This document shows, piece by piece, positions 1,041 through 63,432 of a DNA stretch of 64,000 nt. Every line of letters begins with the position of its first letter. Position 1 is the first letter of the stretch. The notes below the pieces were generated by a model. It made no database searches, was not told where the DNA came from, and saw only the letters and a program-made list of their open reading frames with translations. The stretch is from positions 19,468,001-19,532,000 of the forward strand of contig CM119375.1 in the NCBI GenBank assembly GCA_051294905.1. Direction: 5' to 3'. The stretch is from Botryllus schlosseri. Its lineage: Eukaryota. A program made the translations under genes and the position numbers.

Positions 1041-2585
1041 AAGTCGTTGACCTTTGCAGTTAGGCTTACGCAATCTCTCGAGTTCTAGTCATTGGAATTA
1101 GTCTGGTCAAGTCAAGTGCGAACATGAATCGTATTGAATCTTTGCTCCGTACGTAGGCTAGTTTACGCAGTTGCCTTTAGAGCGAAAATTGAAGGTCTAG
1201 AAGACTACTCCTTGTCGCTTCGACATATTCCTGTCTTTTCATTGTATCGCATTTTTGTGGTGTATTGAACTGATAAAATTGCTAATAAACCAATGATGAT
1301 GATGATAGAAATTGTCCAGTCCATTGATCCAATCGTACGCCGGGTACCTCCGCTTTGGTTGCCTAATGCCTATCACCTGGTCGTAACTCGTAACCACCAG
1401 CTCAGTGGTCGTAACACACCAGGATCGTGTACGAAACACTTTCGGACGGCCTATCGATTTGCGTAATCTCTAACTCTACCATGAAATCATAACGCATGCT
1501 ACTAAGGATGACCTGATAATTGATTCGTGGCATAGGGACGATTCTTAGTTCACGTACATTATGTAAAATAATCCTTTGATTAAAAAAAAATGAATAAAAC
1601 ATTTGTTACCACACTTCAAGTCACGGCTCACCGGCAAACCTCTCGCGGCACCTACGTTAAAATCACTGTTGTCGGGAAATTCATGTGACCATCATATTAA
1701 TGTTACTTTTTTACGTTGGAAAACGCCATTGTGACGTCATGTTGATAAAAGTCGCTCGCAGCCCTTGCCCCACCACCCGATATTGTCACGAGCCGCCACT
1801 GCTCTTACTACTAATAGACATAGGTCATTAATGAAATTTAGGAAGTAGTCAGATACCATAGGGTGCCTTTATTTTATACATGCACTAAGTCGAGTATTCA
1901 AAGACTAGGACTTGCAGTCTTTCTTAATCATTTATTCGACCCAAGCAGCTAAGCTACACTACAAATATTTTAAATTTTGTCAAGTGGGCAGCAGCGTTTG
2001 GTTATAGTTACATCAATTTTACAAAGCAGACGATGTATTTACTTTTAGTTGATATTGAGATTTACTTACACGGGCGACTCTGTGGAACGGCTTAATTCCG
2101 GCTGATAAGAATATGTTGTAATACACGACTCTCCACTCCAACGTCGGCAACCAAGGAAATTTAAACGCTGTACGTTACACATATCCCGGCCGTCAAGCTA
2201 CAGCCGATGAAAATGTTCTTCGAACAATTTTAATTGAAAATTTTTCGTGTAAAATTTTTCAATTGAATTTATAGATAGGTGGACAATTTTTCGATTTGAA
2301 AATGTAGTAAAACGTATTCCATTTAATTGTAAATTAAAATGATAAGAACGGAATATTTCAAAAGCATGCCTCGTTTTTAGGAGCAACCCTGATGTTAATC
2401 GTAAAAGCTGAAAATTGATATTTCTCCTACCCTGATAGAGATATCTAATCATGCGGTACAGAATGCTCAAAGCTGTTTTATTTTTTTCTTCGGTAGTATC
2501 GGTATTAGCAGGTACGTTGTTGTACAATTCTCGAGCTTTTTCGTTTTTTTAGCTATGATTTGATATGAAGTGTCATTCCTTTCAG

Positions 2586-2898
2586 GGCTGAAAAACAGCA
2601 TAAAGTTCGACGGTACTACACTAAAGTTTTATGATGGGCAGCATGATTCAGCAACATTCGGTACTGCAGTTGTGAGTTGCTTTCAGAAAGGCGGAGAACT
2701 AGTCATGCCTAAGTATAAGAAACTGAATGATGCTGTGACTCAAGTCGTTAATGAGTTAGTAAATAAGAACCTCACACAACCATGGATATTTATCGATCAT
2801 TTATTTTCAAGGGGAACCGCGTGGATTGGAGGTGGAGATTTTTTTGGTGAGGGTAATTACGAATGGAACGATGGTGAAAGGCATGAATGGACAAACTG
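2586..2898 (+). CDS. Gene 1 exon 2: N-terminal half of C-type lectin domain 1
   Basis: Acceptor ttcctttcag|GG. Encodes ...AVVSCFQKGGELV...AWIGGGDFFGEGNYEWNDGERHEWTNW with the Trp codon split TG|gt (phase 2). 313 nt. Confidence 0.88.
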
Positions 2899-3238
2899 GT
2901 ATCCTATATTTGAAACAGCCTTTATGCTCTGCATGATTCCAGTTACTGATGTATATAACCCTATACTGAAAATACTATGCTCAGTGCCAGTACCAGTAGG
3001 CTACCTACAAAATATCAGCGTGGGCTTGGGCCGCGATATGGTGGTTATTACGTTATTACTATAGGGACATTGAAACTCTATAAAAGGTTTTTGTTCGTGT
3101 GACCATGGATTTCCGTAAACAGTTCGCTGTGAACATGAACCTATGACATCACCAGGTTTCGCAATGTTAATTCGAATTCAAATCGCTTTCTGAATTCTTG
3201 ACTGCGCTCCTATTAGTTTAGTCTTGACATATTGCAGG

Positions 3239-10770: not shown

Positions 10771-11043
10771 TTGCTGCCCATGATTTGTCTGTTTCCGAAG
10801 AACAACCTTTCGTAGAGCCGGGTATTGATCTGAATATCAACTGCTCTGCATTGGGGATTCCAGTTCCGAAGGTTTCCTGGTACCGAGACGGCAGATACGT
10901 ACCGCATCAGAAACACGGACTCGGCAGCTCAACACTAGTGCTCAAGGACATAGGTCCCGATGATTTGGGCATGTATGTGTGTAAAGCTGTGAACGAAGTT
11001 GGAGGACAGCTGAGACGCATGGGAGGATTGTCTTTCGTTGAAA
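10771..11043 (+). CDS. Gene 1 exon 6: immunoglobulin (I-set-like) domain
   Basis: Acceptor tgctttccag|TT. Contains INCSALG..PKVSWYRDG...STLVL...DDLGMYVCKAVNEVG (Cys, Trp and DxGxYxC Ig motifs). Phase 1-1 exon, donor A|GTAAAT. Confidence 0.92.
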
Positions 11044-11149
11044 GTAAATATGTTGCATATACAGCAGTATACATTGACTCAATCCCGTTTCGAAGATCAT
11101 TACTTCTGTTTTTTCTCTCTCTGTCGTTTGTCACTTTTCCTGCACTCTA

Positions 11150-11552
11150 TAGGGTCGGGTTGTAACCAAGTCAGAGGGCATCGAGTCCAAGTCATTGCGT
11201 TGACTGCTCAGTTTCTAGTTAAAGTCCTGTTAAAGCAACTTTTTATAACTCTGTCTGGTGATATCGAATGGTTCGCGTTTGAAATATAATAATTTCCTGA
11301 CTATAACAGTTTCTGGTCGCATTTTCAAGTAGGCCTATACCAGTACCAATAGGCAAAACACCAACAGTGTGGGTATTTTACCATTCATCGAAATTACAGT
11401 GAAATGTCGGTCTTGGCCGTCTGAGACTCGAGTAATATATGACAATCTGTGTATTACTATTAACTCGAGTCGAGTCATTTTAGTATTTTGAGAAAATGCC
11501 TCGAGTCAAGTCGAGTCATAAGAAAATCGCGACTCGAGTCACTACAACCCTG
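11150..11552. mobile_element. hAT-type MITE family A
   Basis: GGGTTGTAACCAAGTCA ... CTACAACCCTG, colinear with 6178-6579 and 30115-30706. Confidence 0.75.
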
Positions 11553-39991: not shown

Positions 39992-40452
39992 TGTATATAT
40001 TACATAACCTGAATCGTCTTGAGTCTCACATTCATTGCTCTTGCTAGCGAAGTTCAGATCAATTTCATGTGATTTTGCTGTAATCTAAGACGTTTTAATG
40101 TCGAAAATGATGATACTTCTGTAATGCTTTTTTTTACTTTCCTAATCTAAAAAGTCCACACCATCGAAACTTTAAATCAGGGTACCGATGGGGCAGCCAT
40201 ATTTTGTTGATGCTTGTGAGTGGTAACCAAAGTTACAATTCTTATTTACTAGGAAAATATTCAGCTTGGGGTCACAATAAAATTGCCACCAAAATGCATT
40301 AGCATCGGTAAGTTTCGGTGGTGAAACGGGGATTTTATCATATGCTATGATTCTGCCAATATCTATTCTGGACGAACAGGCTGTAAAGTCATTACCGAAA
40401 TATGATTCATAAAAAGTCTTCCGACGAAACTCGAAATCTGGGGACAGACGGC

Positions 40453-40512
40453 TATAAATGAGTAGAAGTTCTCACACTCTTGCACGCATTCTGATTGATA
40501 CTGAACGTGAAG
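40453..40512 (+). promoter_or_regulatory. TATA box and non-coding exon 1 of oligo-arginine peptide gene A
   Basis: TATAAA at 40453-40458 and strong donor AG|GTAAGT at 40512/40513. Both are conserved in copy B (47860 and 47919). Confidence 0.75.
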
Positions 40513-40903
40513 GTAAGTCAAGGTAATCGGAATTTTATATATTGTAAATTCCACTGGTATTTAACGGAGGCTCCTTAAATTCCCGTTGACAGTGGGTTGC
40601 CATTTAGGTGCTATCTCGGTCCGACGTCTTTAAGAATTCAATGCTGGCACCAAGTTCCCTTGAATTGAAACGGTTTGAAGACTTTTCATCATGCCGAACT
40701 TCCAGTAGGATTCTGATGCCATAGTTTATACCGATGTTATGTAGCTTATAGGAGTTACGAATACGAAATATGGAAATGGCTTTATAGGTTTTTCGAAAGC
40801 CATCGCCAAGGTGTATGTGTTTCTAGTGGCTTAGCTGGTAAAAACGCTTAATATGCATGCTTAAAGCCTAAACGCCCAGACCATTGCAGCTACTTGATTG
40901 CAG

Positions 40904-41015
40904 ATGAACTCGAAGCTGCTCGTTGCTGTCTTCCTTGTAGTTGCTCTTCTTGTTGTCGAGAACGAAGCTATTTTGGGCCGCCGGCGCCGCCGTCGCAGAC
41001 GCCGTCGACGCGGGG
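40904..41015 (+). CDS. Oligo-arginine peptide precursor A, exon 2: signal peptide + ILG-R11-G
   Basis: Acceptor ttgattgcag|ATG. Encodes MNSKLLVAVFLVVALLVVENEA ILG RRRRRRRRRRR G. Phase-1 donor G|GTGAGC. Confidence 0.9.
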
Positions 41016-41081
41016 GTGAGCGTGTCTTTTCGAAATATCGAGCAGTTTGCCCTTCATTACAAAGGTATATGCTCTTTTAAG

Positions 41082-41170
41082 ATAACGAGATGGATATGAA
41101 CCGTGAGGAGTTGATGGACGGTGACTTCGATGAGAACGAGGTACATATGGCGGATCAGCACCAACAGTAA
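41082..41170 (+). CDS. Oligo-arginine peptide precursor A, exon 3: acidic C-terminal piece
   Basis: 66-nt intron, acceptor ttttaag|AT. Encodes DNEMDMNREELMDGDFDENEVHMADQHQQ-stop. Precursor 66 aa. The exon continues to the donor at 41184. Confidence 0.88.
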
Positions 41171-41266
41171 TGAAACTCATGCTGGTAATTTGTAATAGAC
41201 TCTTTCTCTGCACGTACTGCATTCAGCCACATTATTATCGCTGATTGTATCGCAGATTTATCGAAA

Positions 41267-41590
41267 AGGAAAGGACGTAGTTTATTTTTGTCCTTTGATG
41301 TTTTTTGCGGCATATACACCTACTCATGATACACATACATACGATCTGTGCATATGCATACCATGAGTGCATGATGTGCATATGTCGCCAGACAAGGAAG
41401 TGCAGATATAGCCTTTACGGCTTTCTAAGTCATGCACCACCCCTCCATGCTATCCCAGTAATGCATGAACGCCAACCAGGGAAGTCATGTATACCAGTGT
41501 TACTAATGAGGTTTTGGTATGACCCGGCCGGGGATCGAACCCACGACCTACCGATCAAGAAGCCGGACGCTTCACCATCACGCTATCTTG
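41267..41590 (-). mobile_element. SINE family 2 in intron 3 of peptide gene A
   Basis: tRNA-Lys-like head (GATAGCGTGATGG...CTTCTTGA...GGTCGTGGGTTCGATCCCC), flanked by TCGAAA direct repeats. Absent at the orthologous position of copy B. Confidence 0.85.
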
Positions 41591-41846
41591 TCGAAATCTA
41601 AAGTAATGCGGCATCCAAACCATACGCTGCTGTACGTAGAATCATTTCGTTGTAAAAAGGATTTCTTAGGTCATGTCGCCGTTTACATGTGGTCAGGGTA
41701 CCAATTTATCCTCGATTTCAAATAAAGATAAGGATGATGAAGATTTATATCGTGAATATCTAACATCTTAATCCTATCACCTTTCAGTATTTTCGCTATA
41801 CCTTTATCGTATCTAAAAGGAAATTTGAAGTGACTTTATTTTACAG

Positions 41847-41917
41847 CCGAATGACCAGCCGGAACTGGAAAAGATATCGTTTCCTTCAGTTGAATTGGAA
41901 ATATAATCCTGAATAAA
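41847..41917 (+). other. 3'-UTR exon 4 with polyA signal, peptide gene A
   Basis: Acceptor ttattttacag|CCGAAT and AATAAA at 41912-41917. Paralogous exon at 48788-48854. Confidence 0.7.
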
Positions 41918-46407: not shown

Positions 46408-46810
46408 TCATTGTGCTGGAAGCCTTATAAGCAAATCTGAATTTGATGAACCCGGACGGGGGTCGTGCACTTCCGGACAAAAAAGATATTTTCCCGGAAG
46501 GCTATAGTGAGTTTGGTCCGTGACAGCACGAGCTCCGGCAGCGAGCTGGATCATTTGCCTTTTCGCTGTCTTCAGGTAGTAAACCGCTGCACGAGTATAT
46601 CGAATGAATAAGACTCCACGTTTTCGAGCCAGGAATGGTTCTGCAGACTTTTGATAGTTTCGAATTCCTGGTGCTCGTAGCAGAACTTCCCCCAGTCCCC
46701 TAGTTTCGGTTACTGATTGAGTCTCATCACGATGGCCCGTTGATGTCGAAAAGCTATGAAGTCTTAATTGCGAACGGATCTCTCCATCTTCATGTCTTCC
46801 GCTTTTGAAG
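46408..46810 (-). other. Open, highly diverged histone-H3-like reading frame (3' part of the 218-codon ORF 46408-47064)
   Basis: IRNYQKSAE vs H3 IRRYQKSTE; LARK vs LIRK; FIRYTRAAVYYLKTAKR vs FQRLVREIAQDFKTDLR (ungapped, 6/17); H..R......D spacing near the C-terminus matches H3 HAKRVTIMPKD. By-eye alignment only. Confidence 0.45.
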
Positions 46811-47859
46811 TCTTGAAAGAAACCAAGCGAAAGTGGTCCGGCGACTGGAGGAAGCTCTACGACGAGCACCAGTAAATCGAAACTGTTAAATGTCTGACGA
46901 ACTGTACGATGAATGTCCGACTTGAAAACGTGGGAGTCGTAGCCTGTTCCTTTTTTTAAACGTGAGCACATTTCATGCCTAAATTTTCTATTTTCACCTG
47001 AAGTAGTTTTGCACATACATAAAAATTGAATACGCTGAATTTGACTACGTGTGATACGGATCATAAAAATAGACTTTGTATTGTGACATACGGTTACCCG
47101 TCATTGCAGCCACACCTGGTTGATTTTGATCAGAAGTTCGTTGACCCAAGAGAATGCAAGAGCGAATTCAGGCATTCAAACTGTTCTTGTAGCCAACATT
47201 ATGCATGTCAGATAGCCTGACACCAACTTTTATAAAAATCAGTTGCGATTGCGGTATTGTCGCCTCATGCATACGCCCGATTAAAAATATATTCAATATT
47301 GTATAAACCTACATGTATGCCGTTACGATTTGTGACGTCGCACTCCTAAACTCAACTGGTGACTGTGCCTTTCACATTTCCCCTGGCTATAGTTCCATAT
47401 GTGTATATTACACAACCTGAATCGTCTTGCGTCTCTCATTCATTGCTCTTGCTGGCGAAGTCCAGATCAATTTCTGGTGATTTTGCTGTAAACTAATACG
47501 TTTTAACGTAGAAAATGATGATACTTCCGTATTGATTTTTTTTCTTTCCTAATCTAAAAAGTTCACAACATCGTAACTTTAAATCAGGGTTCCGCTTGGG
47601 CAGTCATATTTTGTGGATGGTTGTGAGTGGTAATCAAAGTTAGAATTCCTATTTACTAGGAATATATCCAACTTGCAGCCACAATAAAATTGTCACCAAA
47701 ATGCATTAGTATCGGTAATTATCGGCGGTGAAACAGGGATTTTATCATAAGCCATGATTCTGCGAATATCTATTCTGGACGAACAGGCTGTAAAGTCATT
47801 ACCGAAATATGATTCATAAAAAGTCTTCCGACGAAACTCGAAATCTCGGGACCGACGGC

Positions 47860-47919
47860 TATAAATGAGTGAAAGTTTTGGCACTCTTGCACGCATTCTG
47901 ATTGATACTAAACGTGAAG
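47860..47919 (+). promoter_or_regulatory. TATA box and non-coding exon 1 of oligo-arginine peptide gene B
   Basis: TATAAA at 47860-47865 and donor AG|GTAAGT at 47919/47920. Confidence 0.75.
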
Positions 47920-48186
47920 GTAAGTCAAGCTAATCAGAATTATATTACAAATTCTACTGGTATTTATGTTCCTGTATAGTAGGATTCTGATGTCATAGTT
48001 CATAATGACGCTATGTAGCTTATAGAGCTTACGAATAGGAATTATGAAAATGGCCTAACTGGTTTTTCAAAATCCATCGACAAGGTGTGGGCTATGCATG
48101 TGTTTCTAGTGGCTAATCCAGCGAAAACGCTTCATATACCTACTGAAACCCTAAACGCCCAAACTACTGCAGCTCTTTGATCGCAG

Positions 48187-48301
48187 ATGAACTCGAAGCT
48201 GCTCGTTGCTGTCTTTCTTGTAGTTGCTCTGCTTGTTGTCGAGAATGAAGCTATTTTTGGCCGCCGACGCCGCCGCCGTCGCAGACGCCGTCGACGTGGA
48301 G
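48187..48301 (+). CDS. Oligo-arginine peptide precursor B, exon 2: signal peptide + IFG-R12-G
   Basis: Acceptor ttgatcgcag|ATG. Encodes MNSKLLVAVFLVVALLVVENEA IFG R12 G. Donor G|GTGAGC. Confidence 0.9.
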
Positions 48302-48371
48302 GTGAGCGTTCATCTTCGAAATAGCTACCATGCAGTATATCTTTCATTACAAAAGTATATGTCATGTTAAG

Positions 48372-48463
48372 ATAACGAAATGAATATGCATCACGAGGAG
48401 TTGATGGATGGTGACGTCGATGAGAACGAGGCAATGATGGAGGATCAGCACAATCAGCAGTAA
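48372..48463 (+). CDS. Oligo-arginine peptide precursor B, exon 3: acidic C-terminal piece
   Basis: 70-nt intron. Encodes DNEMNMHHEELMDGDVDENEAMMEDQHNQQ-stop. Precursor 68 aa. Donor at 48474. Confidence 0.88.
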
Positions 48464-48787
48464 AACTCATGCCGGTAATTTATAATTATCTCTTGCTCTG
48501 CACCCTGCACGTACTGCATTCTGACACATTATTATCTGTTTTCACTGAAATGAAATCACTGATTGTATCGCAGATTTATCCAAATCTATAACTATGCGTT
48601 CGTCCCCTTTTACATCTGGTCATGGACCAATTTATCCTACATTTCCAATTAGTATGAGGATGATGCAGTTTTATATTTTGGACATCTAAATAATAATATA
48701 TCTTAACACCGTCATCCTATCACCTCTTAATATTTTCGCTACCTTTATCTTAACTAAAAGGAAACTTAAATGGTTTTCATTTTTCAG

Positions 48788-48854
48788 CCGAATAAAGATC
48801 CGGAATTGGAAAGATGTTTACTTCAGTTGAATTGTAGCTATAATCCGGAATAAA
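48788..48854 (+). other. 3'-UTR exon 4 with polyA signals, peptide gene B
   Basis: Acceptor tttttcag|CCGAAT, AATAAA at 48791-48796 and 48849-48854. Confidence 0.7.
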
Positions 48855-51800
48855 TTCGCTCATGTAGGCTATCGGTGTGTAATTTTATGTACCCTTGGGC
48901 TAGGAATATGTACATTTCAGGTTGTTTATTTGAGGTTGCAATGATTATGAACTATCTCCAATAGTGTCATGTACCCTTGGGCTGGAAATATTTACATTTC
49001 AGCTTGTTTCTTTGAGGTTGCAGTGATTATGAACTATCTGCAATACCATTAAACTTATACGCTCCTCTATATTATGATCCTACCGATCATTTACTTAACA
49101 CGATTACACCGAACCGAAAGGCCTTTGACAATTCTCACTGGGGAACATATTTATTATCGCAAAGTCCTATACAATTAGTAACTTGGACTAAAATAGCGGT
49201 TCATAACTCGTAGGTTGCGACCTAAATGGGAGTCAGAACGTCACCTAAGCAGTTATCAACGCCGTTCAGGTTTCCGACACAGTATTTGCTATTTTATGCC
49301 GGAATGAACTTCAAACCACGTGGCATGTATTTGAAAACAATACACCATGTCAACAACGGTACTGAAATCTAGACCTAATTGCATCTCAGGCAGCTCCGTT
49401 CAGCGATTCATTACGATCTCGGTACACCCCCCCCCCCCACCACCCCCCCCCCAATAACGCTTAGCAAATTACTTATCCTCTAAATAACTCCAAGTAATGG
49501 GACGAGCATGTGATCGAGTGTCGGGTTTTCATACCTTGACGTAGGTTTTCCATTCGGGTTTCTTGGCTTCGATCCCAAAGGTAAAAGTAGAACCAAAACG
49601 AATAGAAACGGCCTTACGGCGCATTGAGTGCTGTCAATACGATGTTGCAAAAATTAGACGAATAGCCATGGCTCTCTCTCTGATCTAACGCCCATAAAGT
49701 ATTTTGAGTTTGCGAAGCTCCTGCGATGCAGACATTTGGCTGCTAATCATTGGTGGGGATGTCATCATCGATTCACATCCAAGTCCTTCGCCGTTCCAAG
49801 TCTTGAAGACGCGTGATTTCATTAGAGTTCATATGCATTCTACTAAATGGTAGAGTAGCAACTGGTAGAGAATTGAAAAGGACATGCCATATCAACAATC
49901 TTATGGCAAAATATGACGTCACCGCGATACGTTTGTTGAAAGACAGCAGTAGTTCTTCACCTTCGCACCAGCGCCTCTCAGGGGACGATTTGGATTTTGA
50001 AGATTGCAGAAACTCTCAAAGAGCGATATGGGGGCCATCGGAGCGCTGAACGAAATTGGCGTAGCAGTATAGATGGTGTAGTAGTTCTCAAGTGGAAATG
50101 TAGTTCTGTATAGCATAGCTAAATTTCTACATGTAGCTTACCTGAGCTCTTGCTGCAAATTGACTTCTGATCCAATTTAGCAAACCACCAAACTTTTCGT
50201 CGAGCTACGTGGTAAATTTACCAGGGATGTATGCAACGTATTTTTCAAACAAAGTTGGTATCTCGCGCAAAATCAGTATCACGTCAGTGAAACCATGCAA
50301 ATCCTATATGATATGCTCAATGAATAAAGGCAAACATAGATGTTTTATCTATGGTTACCATATTTTTGCAAGACAAATTCCGGGCGCTCTTTGGCTCCTA
50401 CTAGTGGGTTTTAAAATGAGGTATAAGTACATTGTCGATCATTATGACGTTTCACCAGCGAAGCTTTGTCTATCGAGTAGAGGTGGTCACGATCCGGTTC
50501 AGCAGTATATGGCTGCGTGTGTTGTAAGTTGTAACCAGGGTTGAAGCCACATTTTTAGCCCCCTGCCGCGCAAATAAACACAAATTTTAGGCCCACTGTA
50601 GGGTAATCGATGCAACTTCTGGAGGCTTACTATATGTATCCATTCGTTAAATGATTTGAATGAATTATGTCATTATTATTGGTTCTTCCATATATTACTA
50701 TATCATTTTTATCCTCTCTCCGCCCACATGATCACAGTCAGTGTTAGAGCTGGTGGAGGATCTCTTCGAAAATGCAAGGAGCGTAATTGTACATCGTTAA
50801 GTCATGGTCATGTCACATCGATAAGATTATTTATCAGCATAATGCCGGTGCGCACTGCACCACTGAGCTATTTAAACTCCGCACATCCGGTGGTCTGCAA
50901 CCTTTTATGGTCGCGACTCAATGTTCAATTTGCCGAGGCCAGCTCCAAATTTGAGAAGCTGATTACTAATTAAAGGTCGGCACATTAGCCCACACTTACT
51001 CACGGCCTATTTTGGAGGATGATTACGTTCAACATCTTCGCGGAACCCAGAATGAAAACTACCCCCAGAACCACTATCTTTGAAAAGAGTATCCAAACGG
51101 TTTAAGCCGACTCTGTGAATGTACCGTTGTATTGTAATTGCGATTACAATTATACTTATTTCTGTAAATGATTGCTATTTTTAATTATTTTTGATCGCAG
51201 TTTTTGAGAGGGTGGTAGTTCCCATATTAAAAATAATACAAGTGATATTAATTGGTGCGCAGCGCGTAGGTAGGTCGCTACTAGTACATACACGTTCGAC
51301 TTCGATAACGGAATTGATGCAGTAATCATTGTATGACAAACCGGAAAATTTGCACAGTGTATGACAGGGGTCGACAACCTTTTGATGGTCACGGGCCAGA
51401 CATCGAGTGTACAACGATTTGGCGGGACGGACATTTCATTTGTATTATAATTCACACTCACTTAAGTAGGCTATATTACGCTACATTGCTCTAATCTCAA
51501 TCACACCAATCACAAAAAAAGCAAAATATATGTAGTCACACTTCAACAATACCGCATTAATGTGATACTTGATGTTGCTTGCTTTGTGAAAGTTTTTAGC
51601 ATCTAGTAACCAGTCAGATTAAGCAACAAACAAAACATTTTCTAAGTGGGCGTCGGGAATGCATGATCTTAGCTTGCTCTACATGAATATTAAAGTTGAA
51701 AACATTTGTTCACAAACATAGTTGCAATTTACGTTGCATTGCTGGTCAAGCTGGAATAAAGACCACTTTCTTTGAGTAGAAGTCAAGCAGCGATACGCCC

Positions 51801-62479: not shown

Positions 62480-62667
62480 TCCGCGATGCATGCACTGCGA
62501 TGACGAAATCACACAATGCACTAGTCAACTCGTGTCTACCTGTTTGAGTAGGCGCAGTGTGTTATTGCGCAACAGCTAGGTTTAATCATGTTTCACAAAA
62601 ATGTATTCTTCTTTCTATGCAATTACGCCTACACATAGAAGACATCCCTCTACTCAACCAATATAAA

Positions 62668-62949
62668 CTCTCTATCTCTCTATCTCTCTATCTCTCTATA
62701 TCTCTATCTCTCTATCTCTCTATCTCTCTATCTCTCTATCTCTCTATCTCTCTATCTCTCTATCGCTCTATCTCCCTATCGCTCTATCGCTCTATCTCTC
62801 TATCTCGCTATCTCTCTATCTCTCTATCGCTATATCTCTCTCTCTCTACCTCTCTGTCTCTCTGTCTCTCTGTCTCTCTATCTCTCTATCCCTCTATCCC
62901 TCTATCGCTAAATCCCTCTATCTCTCTATCTCTCCATCTCTCCATCTCC
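62668..62949. repeat. (TCTCTATC)n-type simple repeat
   Basis: Direct reading. About 280 bp of degenerate 6-8-mer polypyrimidine repeats. Confidence 0.95.
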
Positions 62950-63432
62950 AAGTATAACTATACATCAAACACATTACTATAGTCCACAAAATGAACTGTG
63001 CAGGTGTGCACCAACAGAGTGTTAAAAGATAAAAACAATTGAAATATAATTTTCACAGGAAACGAAAACATTATAATGAATATTTATAGCAAATCTTACT
63101 CTGCTGTTCCCCTTCAGATGCCAGTTCAGAAACCTTGTAAAGTGTCATCGTAATGTTCGGTCAAACTATATACGCAACACCAACACTAACAATGTGATTA
63201 CGGATCGGGCATAATTTCCTGCAACCAATGATGCCCCTGACGGGCGCGTCATAGCATATCATATGTATCAGTTGCGTGCGTGTAGGTATCCTCTGAGACT
63301 GGTTCAGAGAACCTCTGATGTTCCATGGAACACCGATTAAGAACCACTATGATATGTAGAGTTAGGAACGATATCGCTAAAGTCCGGTAATGAAACTATT
63401 GCATCATTTACAAGTGTATTGTGTCTTCACAG

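Follow-up and report, generated by a model that had tools for sequence, protein, structure and literature searches.

Results

In the window analyzed here, a stretch of 64,000 nucleotides of Botryllus schlosseri DNA, the interval from 47860 to 48854 holds a genuine, spliced and transcribed small gene on the plus strand (copy B), which is the second member of a tandem pair. The interval begins with the TATA box of this gene and closes with its polyadenylation signal. The first member, copy A (40453 to 41917, plus strand), lies 7.3 kb upstream, and both copies sit in a tandem segmental duplication (roughly 35.0 to 42.0 kb versus 45.1 to 49.1 kb). Searching the 64-kb window for further gene copies with blastn and tblastn, we found A and B alone. 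In silico splicing, carried out on 47500 to 49300 and 40100 to 41900 of the window, gave for copy B four exons and a 68-aa precursor composed of a 22-aa signal, the residues I-F-G, 12 arginines, one glycine and an acidic tail of 30 aa. The same layout is seen in copy A, which has four exons, introns of 391, 66 and 662 nt and an ATG at 40904, and encodes 66 aa in which I-L-G precedes 11 arginines. Furthermore, the phase-1 intron after the Gly codon lies at the same place in both copies. The identical exon/intron layout and the 68-aa precursor that the first-pass annotation had described were both found, with RNA reads spliced across the three introns of copy B, and so were the two differences it had listed for the mature region, namely a change from L to F and one extra Arg.

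Transcription of copy B starts 31 nt past its TATA box (TATAAA, 47860 to 47865), as seen in 28 raw RNA reads of run X24 in which the template-switch adaptor stands immediately before position 47891. Exon 1 (47891 to 47919) is a 29-nt 5′ untranslated region (5′UTR) without an upstream ATG, and the open reading frame (ORF) begins at the first AUG of the mRNA. The following GT..AG intron (47920 to 48186, 267 nt) has a GTAAGT donor and is removed in 36 X24 reads joining 47919 to 48187. Exon 2 consists of the 22 codons of the signal-peptide part, starting with the ATG at 48187 (48187 to 48252), and of a second part (48253 to 48301) with I-F-G, the 12 Arg codons, the Gly codon and the first base of the Asp codon; the latter part rests on the sequence and on in-frame RNA length variants. 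Intron 2 (48302 to 48371, phase 1, 70 nt) is absent from one X10 contig and from 20 X24 reads joining 48301 to 48372. Exon 3 (48372 to 48474) encodes the acidic tail, which has a net charge of −11, and ends with the TAA stop (48461 to 48463) and 11 nt of 3′UTR. Intron 3 (48475 to 48787, 313 nt) interrupts the 3′UTR, and its splicing is documented by the first X10 contig, which joins 48474 to 48788 and carries a C>G variant at 48472 that is also present in the DNA-like run X6. Exon 4 (48788 to 48870) contains the rest of the 3′UTR with the AATAAA signal (48849 to 48854), and RNA depth stops in the 48824 to 48874 bin. The mRNA has a length of ~330 nt. Because the stop codon lies only 11 nt before the exon 3/4 junction, nonsense-mediated decay, which usually follows a 50-nt rule, is not expected.

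Read depth at copy B fell to zero ahead of the start site, within the introns and past ~48875; the transcription unit is compact and independent. An antisense ORF of 112 aa (48132 to 48470) was dismissed, since the GT..AG sites and the adaptor-tagged 5′ ends put transcription on the plus strand. Seven X24 reads, which carry four differences from copy B, splice exon 1 to an acceptor that lies 24 nt before the usual one (48163 to 48186). Copy A has an AG precisely at this point (cccAGacc), whereas copy B has AA there. Some family members thus use an alternative 3′ splice site within the 5′UTR, which leaves the ORF unaffected. An 82-nt unit occurs twice in tandem (48880 to 49043, 88% identical) just past the copy B polyadenylation site, and once at copy A.

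The RNA and DNA runs were mapped with a threshold of 90% likeness, which also admits sequences from paralogues and alleles. A 289-nt spliced contig from run X10 covers exons 2, 3 and 4 and has no mismatch to copy B in exons 2 and 3. Given that copies A and B differ at 18 of the 92 coding positions of exon 3, this contig represents a transcript of the B locus. Its Arg run is shorter by 9 nt, and it therefore encodes R9. Run X20 gave almost no reads, indicating that expression depends on the sample. The X24 reads were 90 to 99% alike to copy B, almost all of them 90 to 95%, and all carried 48246C. In this animal, expression comes not from the reference-A or reference-B haplotype of exon 2 but from at least two major exon 2 haplotypes (~40% and ~60%) and at least three exon 3 types (~65%, 30% and 5%). 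The second X10 contig represents one more type, distinct from the others. The presence of at least three types within one library suggests that two or more loci are expressed, provided that the library does not come from pooled colonies. Length variants of the Arg run in RNA were −3 and −9 nt, all in frame, and the number of arginines is 9, 11 or 12 among alleles or paralogues.

Two proposals of the first-pass annotation were only partly borne out by these data. It had considered both genes functional. Copy B is indeed transcribed and correctly spliced, but the exon 2 markers of reference A were absent from the two informative RNA runs, in which other haplotypes were found. It had also proposed that the family varies the number of arginines and the hydrophobicity of the cap. 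The former agrees with the 9, 11 and 12 arginines observed, but the variation of the cap comes down to a single L/F difference, and all RNA haplotypes read F.

Two similar units merely 7.3 kb apart, in an animal that is evidently very polymorphic and shows many haplotypes in its RNA runs, might reflect an assembly or haplotype duplicate of copy A; copy B might also be a decaying pseudogene or an untranslated ORF. We consider this highly improbable. The introns of the two units are 18 to 24% diverged and contain different large insertions, which is far past allelic variation, and both units lie on one contig. Furthermore, run X6, an independent run, contains B-specific intron 1 sequence (47999 to 48160) with one mismatch and thus supports the B locus independently, and the B-specific spliced mRNA is present in X10. 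Additionally, the ORF, the splice sites and the TATA box of copy B are intact, and dN/dS is well under 1. An insertion of ~300 nt in intron 3 of copy A (41290 to 41600) is found in copy A only. Its end resembles the 3′ half of a tRNA on the minus strand, with the T-arm GGTTCGATCCC, and the insertion is probably a tRNA-derived SINE; ARAGORN called no tRNA at this insertion, and Rfam and tRNA scans of the 64-kb window gave no matches. Its restriction to copy A is one more sign that the two copies are old paralogues rather than haplotypes. With an intron divergence of ~21%, different insertions and the B-specific intron 1 in X6, the artifact or pseudogene reading of copy B is largely refuted, in keeping with the initial view of two true paralogues.

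Other features were observed in the window. An exon-like ORF at 10785 to 11165 (plus strand) encodes an immunoglobulin I-set/Ig_3 domain (E = 4 × 10−13), and another at 2570 to 3064 (plus strand) has a weak C-type lectin match (E = 8 × 10−4, under the Pfam cut-off). These ORFs point to other genes, possibly of immune type, in the window. The duplicated block upstream of copy B contains a 218-aa ATG-initiated ORF on the minus strand (46408 to 47064) with no Pfam match; the matching part of the A block has no ORF of at least 110 aa, and the 218-aa ORF is probably no gene. A long tandem array of an 8-nt repeat (62557 to 62990; at least 34 registers, strong negative GC skew) yields a meaningless ORF of 141 aa.

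To compare the two copies, we aligned them globally, scored their differences by region and applied Nei-Gojobori counts. The introns differ at 129 of 612 positions with many indels, divergence being 18% with four indel events in intron 1 and 24% in intron 2. In exon 2, the signal-coding part differs at 3 of 66 positions and the remainder at 4 of 46, with one additional 3-nt indel. Exon 2 is therefore more conserved than the introns (7/112 versus 129/612; Fisher P = 7 × 10−5). In this scoring, exon 3 was not more conserved than the introns, with 18 differences in 92 coding positions. A coding part less diverged than the introns, as implied by the first-pass annotation, was thus recovered for exon 2 but not for exon 3. 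The three differences in the signal region are exactly the synonymous changes that had been reported (TTC/TTT, CTT/CTG and AAC/AAT), with no non-synonymous change.

The introns and flanks had also been described as heavily substituted. This holds for the introns and for the 3′ flank, where divergence is strong and indels are many, but not for the 5′ flank. Indeed, in the 160-nt proximal promoter that precedes the TATA box of copy B (47700 to 47859, plus strand), just 10 positions (6%) are changed relative to copy A, compared to 21% in the introns (Fisher P = 3 × 10−6). This segment and its counterpart at 40293 to 40452 are 94% identical, a higher conservation than that of the exon for the acidic tail. 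It contains GAAACTCGAAAT and TGATTCAT right before the TATA box as candidate regulatory elements.

Between A and B, dN/dS was 0.06 for exon 2 (binomial P = 0.003), 0.17 for the tail and 0.21 for the whole coding sequence (P = 0.002), values that average both paralogous lineages and so do not prove constraint on either copy alone. In the signal part, dS was 0.195, close to the intron distance of 0.21 to 0.29. Synonymous sites thus changed at the neutral rate while replacement sites were held, which indicates purifying selection with no need for gene conversion. Gene conversion as the cause of exon 2 conservation was rejected because the synonymous sites of the signal have diverged like the introns; it is also disfavored by intron 1, which is 18% diverged and lies between the conserved promoter and exon 2. 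When reference A and the RNA haplotypes were considered together, exon 2 showed 18 distinct changes, of which 16 were synonymous and only two, F24L and the hydrophobic-core change A14S, were replacements (P ~ 2 × 10−7), against a neutral expectation of ~71% replacements. The Arg run is encoded by a mixture of CGC, CGA, CGT, CGG and AGA codons, with an AGA in corresponding places of both copies, which indicates selection on the run of amino acids rather than on a DNA repeat. The exon coding for the signal and the Arg run is under purifying selection. This confirms the selection on the coding part claimed initially, on stronger grounds (16:2 in exon 2, P = 0.002 for the whole coding sequence) than the original count of 3:0.

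The acidic tail is the fastest-evolving coding part, with a dN of 0.126 compared to 0.013 in exon 2, and the 13 variants in exon 3 comprised 6 synonymous changes and 7 replacements. Nevertheless, a tail core, E-E-L-M-D-G-D-x-D-E-N-E, showed no change among the two references and the reads placed on B.

The precursor of copy B starts with M-N-S-K, followed by 14 hydrophobic residues and E-N-E-A. This n/h/c pattern predicts a signal peptide with a cut after Ala22. AlphaFold modeled the signal part as a confident helix (pLDDT ~90); run without an alignment, it returned the whole precursor as one long low-confidence helix, which is uninformative. The charges of the cationic part and the tail are +12 and −11 in copy B and +11 and −10 in copy A, so that the pro-form is near neutral overall. 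The R9 transcript in X10 keeps the unchanged −11 tail, indicating that the charge match is not strict. The boundary between the cationic part and the tail of copy B reads R12-G-D-N-E, with an acidic residue and no basic motif. Two glycines could serve as amidation donors, Gly38 (after R12 and before Asp) and Gly25 (before Arg-Arg). The Gly38-Asp context fits the sea-squirt precedent, but Gly25-Arg-Arg is equally canonical, and either may be the donor of the putative amide end.

We compared this precursor with known ascidian peptides. The linear cationic antimicrobial precursors of Ciona consist of a signal, a cationic region and an anionic helical pro-region, and their boundary is free of basic processing motifs (Ohtsuka and Inagaki 2020, PMC7387483). 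Styelins are cut N-terminal of D and clavanins N-terminal of DD (PMC7387483), and both are C-terminally amidated (PMC10608444). Copy B shares with ascidian precursors an N-terminal signal, a length of 68 aa (within ~50 to 100) and an anionic pro-region with an acidic boundary. It does not share the amphipathic alpha-helix, as its cationic part is a +12 homopolymer without a hydrophobic face. Compared by description, the clavanins and styelins of Styela clava (Lehrer group) are blood-cell peptides that are cut before Asp and amidated, and the Gly-then-Asp context of copy B is alike. However, they are His/Phe-rich amphipathic helices of 23 to 32 aa with heavy side-chain modifications, whereas copy B has an Arg homopolymer.

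A close parallel was found in the Ci-MAM family (Ci-MAM-A, -D and -E; Fedders and Leippe). These proteins and copies A and B are 66 to 78 aa long and consist of a signal, a cationic part and an anionic C-terminal pro-region. The Ci-MAM pro-region and the tail of copy B are both rich in Met, Glu, Asp and Gln, and an acidic residue at the boundary replaces the basic motif. The signal of Ci-MAM-E, which begins M-N-R-K-I-V-F-A-L-F-L-V-V, resembles that of copy B in its M-N-x-K start and in F-L-V-V. Moreover, Ci-MAM-D and -E have L-V-(V/L)-G followed by 4 to 5 arginines (...V-G-RRRRR in Ci-MAM-D and ...L-V-L-G-RRRR in Ci-MAM-E, before the acidic tail), where copies A and B have I-(L/F)-G followed by 11 to 12, a run 2 to 3 times longer. 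Unlike Ci-MAM, copies A and B have no amphipathic helix (at least 13 residues of the cationic core are missing) and no W-N-(E/Q) junction motif.

Ci-MAM-E aligns colinearly with copies A and B, with a 13-residue gap at its amphipathic helix. In region-preserving shuffles, the whole alignment with Ci-MAM-E reached P ~ 0.01 to 0.02, while those with Ci-MAM-D and KH.S921.1 were not significant. The signal comparison with Ci-MAM-E (score 40) gave P = 0.0006 in a full shuffle but P = 0.08 when only the hydrophobic core was shuffled, and the similarity of the tails to Ci-MAM was not above composition. We thus did not retain homology to Ci-MAM as a result, since the tails stand at composition level and the signal at P = 0.08 under the fair null; common descent with Ci-MAM is a lead suggested by sequence likeness.

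Searches for further relatives gave little. In a word-indexed search of 5.8 billion protein clusters, none shared even three 5-residue words with the query, and the products of the window itself were missing from these clusters too, indicating that the gene is unannotated. An exhaustive phmmer search of 1.84 billion representative proteins returned a single spurious match to a repetitive protein of 634 aa, and degenerate back-translated patterns of the signal and the conserved tail core had no matches in metagenome contigs. Among the protein-language-model neighbors of exon 2, an unnamed viral cluster scored 0.71, and named families of small secreted cationic peptide precursors, such as apelin, frog antimicrobial precursors and pleurocidin, scored 0.51 to 0.55; with such low scores, these neighbors serve as a lead only. 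We conclude that copy B is a functional gene, transcribed on its own, and that it belongs to a small family restricted to its lineage. Such tiny genes, with an mRNA of ~330 nt, escape gene prediction, as the absence of both copies and of any relative from billions of predicted proteins shows.

Protamines, the sperm nuclear basic proteins of fish and mammals, likewise have very small genes with Arg runs, of 4 to 7 residues, encoded by mixed CGN and AGA codons. They have no signal peptide and no acidic tail, are nuclear and are testis specific. The hydrophobic signal peptide and the acidic pro-piece of copy B rule out that it is a protamine.

Discussion

Judged by its sequence, the copy B precursor follows the plan of the linear cationic host-defense peptides of sea squirts, with an unusual cationic part in which a short hydrophobic cap (I-F-G) precedes an Arg homopolymer. 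We tentatively hypothesize, with slightly less than even confidence, that its product is a self-neutralized, secreted polycationic effector of the host-defense type. The acidic tail would keep the oligo-arginine harmless through synthesis and storage. Cleavage before Asp, as in clavanins and styelins, would release I-F-G-Rn, and the exposed Gly could be converted to a C-terminal amide. The free oligo-arginine would then serve as the polycationic effector, with microbial and other polyanionic surfaces as its targets. We infer processing, amide end and activity alike, and several points speak against this hypothesis. A homopolymeric Arg run is unable to adopt the amphipathic helix by which the sea-squirt peptides known so far are defined. 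Furthermore, an Arg run in the secretory pathway is a multiple furin-type site, and carboxypeptidase trimming after such a cleavage could erase the whole run. The loose charge match of the R9 transcript, the likeness to Ci-MAM that falls short of significance under the fair null and the lack of the reference-B haplotype in X24 also count against it.

The Arg run could instead be a processing signal or spacer. A convertase and a carboxypeptidase would then leave no more than I-F-amide, if anything useful at all, and the product would be the C-terminal peptide, which is acidic and rich in Met and His. This would explain why I-F-G followed by Arg-Arg matches the classical Gly-dibasic motif, and it fits the G-RRRRR and G-RRRR found at the same position in Ci-MAM-D and -E as well as the invariant core of the tail. 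However, the putative product would then be the least constrained part of the precursor, with its higher dN and with non-synonymous changes in 7 of its 13 variants. Additionally, 12 arginines are far above the need of a cleavage site, and 9 to 12 are retained in every haplotype seen. Polyarginines also inhibit furin-type convertases with nanomolar Ki, as shown for D-forms, and need not act as ordinary substrates (PMC4482483). Overall, we regard a mere processing role of the run as unlikely.

The same inhibitory property lends itself to a role outside defense, in which copy B would encode an inhibitor or regulator of furin-type convertases. Alternatively, the peptide could bind polyanions or form coacervates with them (sulfated tunic glycans, polyphosphate or nucleic acids), the tail serving as counter-ion. 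The near-neutral charge of the pro-form is in agreement with such a role, and so is the fact that polyarginine restrained by a polyanion works in synthetic activatable cell-penetrating peptides (PMC8341016). Nevertheless, the build of the gene, its tandem duplication and its allelic diversity are more typical of host-defense families, and we think it improbable that the polycation serves a non-defense function.

Under the effector hypothesis, copy B also bears comparison with these synthetic peptides, in which a polyarginine is masked by a linked polyanion until the linker is cut (PMC8341016). Its Arg run equals those of synthetic R8 to R12 and activatable cell-penetrating peptides in length, and it is likewise covalently paired with a polyanion of matched charge that is to be cut off (PMC8341016). 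However, activatable cell-penetrating peptides are man-made, from polyArg, a cleavable linker and polyGlu, whereas copy B is gene encoded, secreted and evolutionarily conserved, and its order is polycation and then polyanion, without a known linker protease. Our literature search found no report pairing an Arg run of at least 11 with a natural signal-peptide precursor, only reviews on cell-penetrating peptides. It is possible, although we hold this bolder claim to be doubtful, that the family represents the first natural, gene-encoded, secreted homopolymeric oligo-arginine (R9 to R12 with a two-residue hydrophobic cap), with a self-neutralized pro-form whose tail is cut at Gly-Asp. It would then be a natural counterpart of activatable cell-penetrating and antimicrobial oligo-arginines. 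A possible origin of the oligo-arginine gene is a Ci-MAM-type gene that lost its helix and expanded its Arg cluster.

Oligo-arginines of 8 to 12 residues are among the most-used synthetic cell-entering and antimicrobial peptides, and the cleavable polyanion mask is an engineered device. If our hypothesis is true, a conserved, transcribed animal gene family with a masked oligo-arginine would mean that evolution preceded the engineers, and the natural processing protease and the solution to storage would become open to study. Overall, the host-defense peptides of sea squirts would then extend past amphipathic helices.
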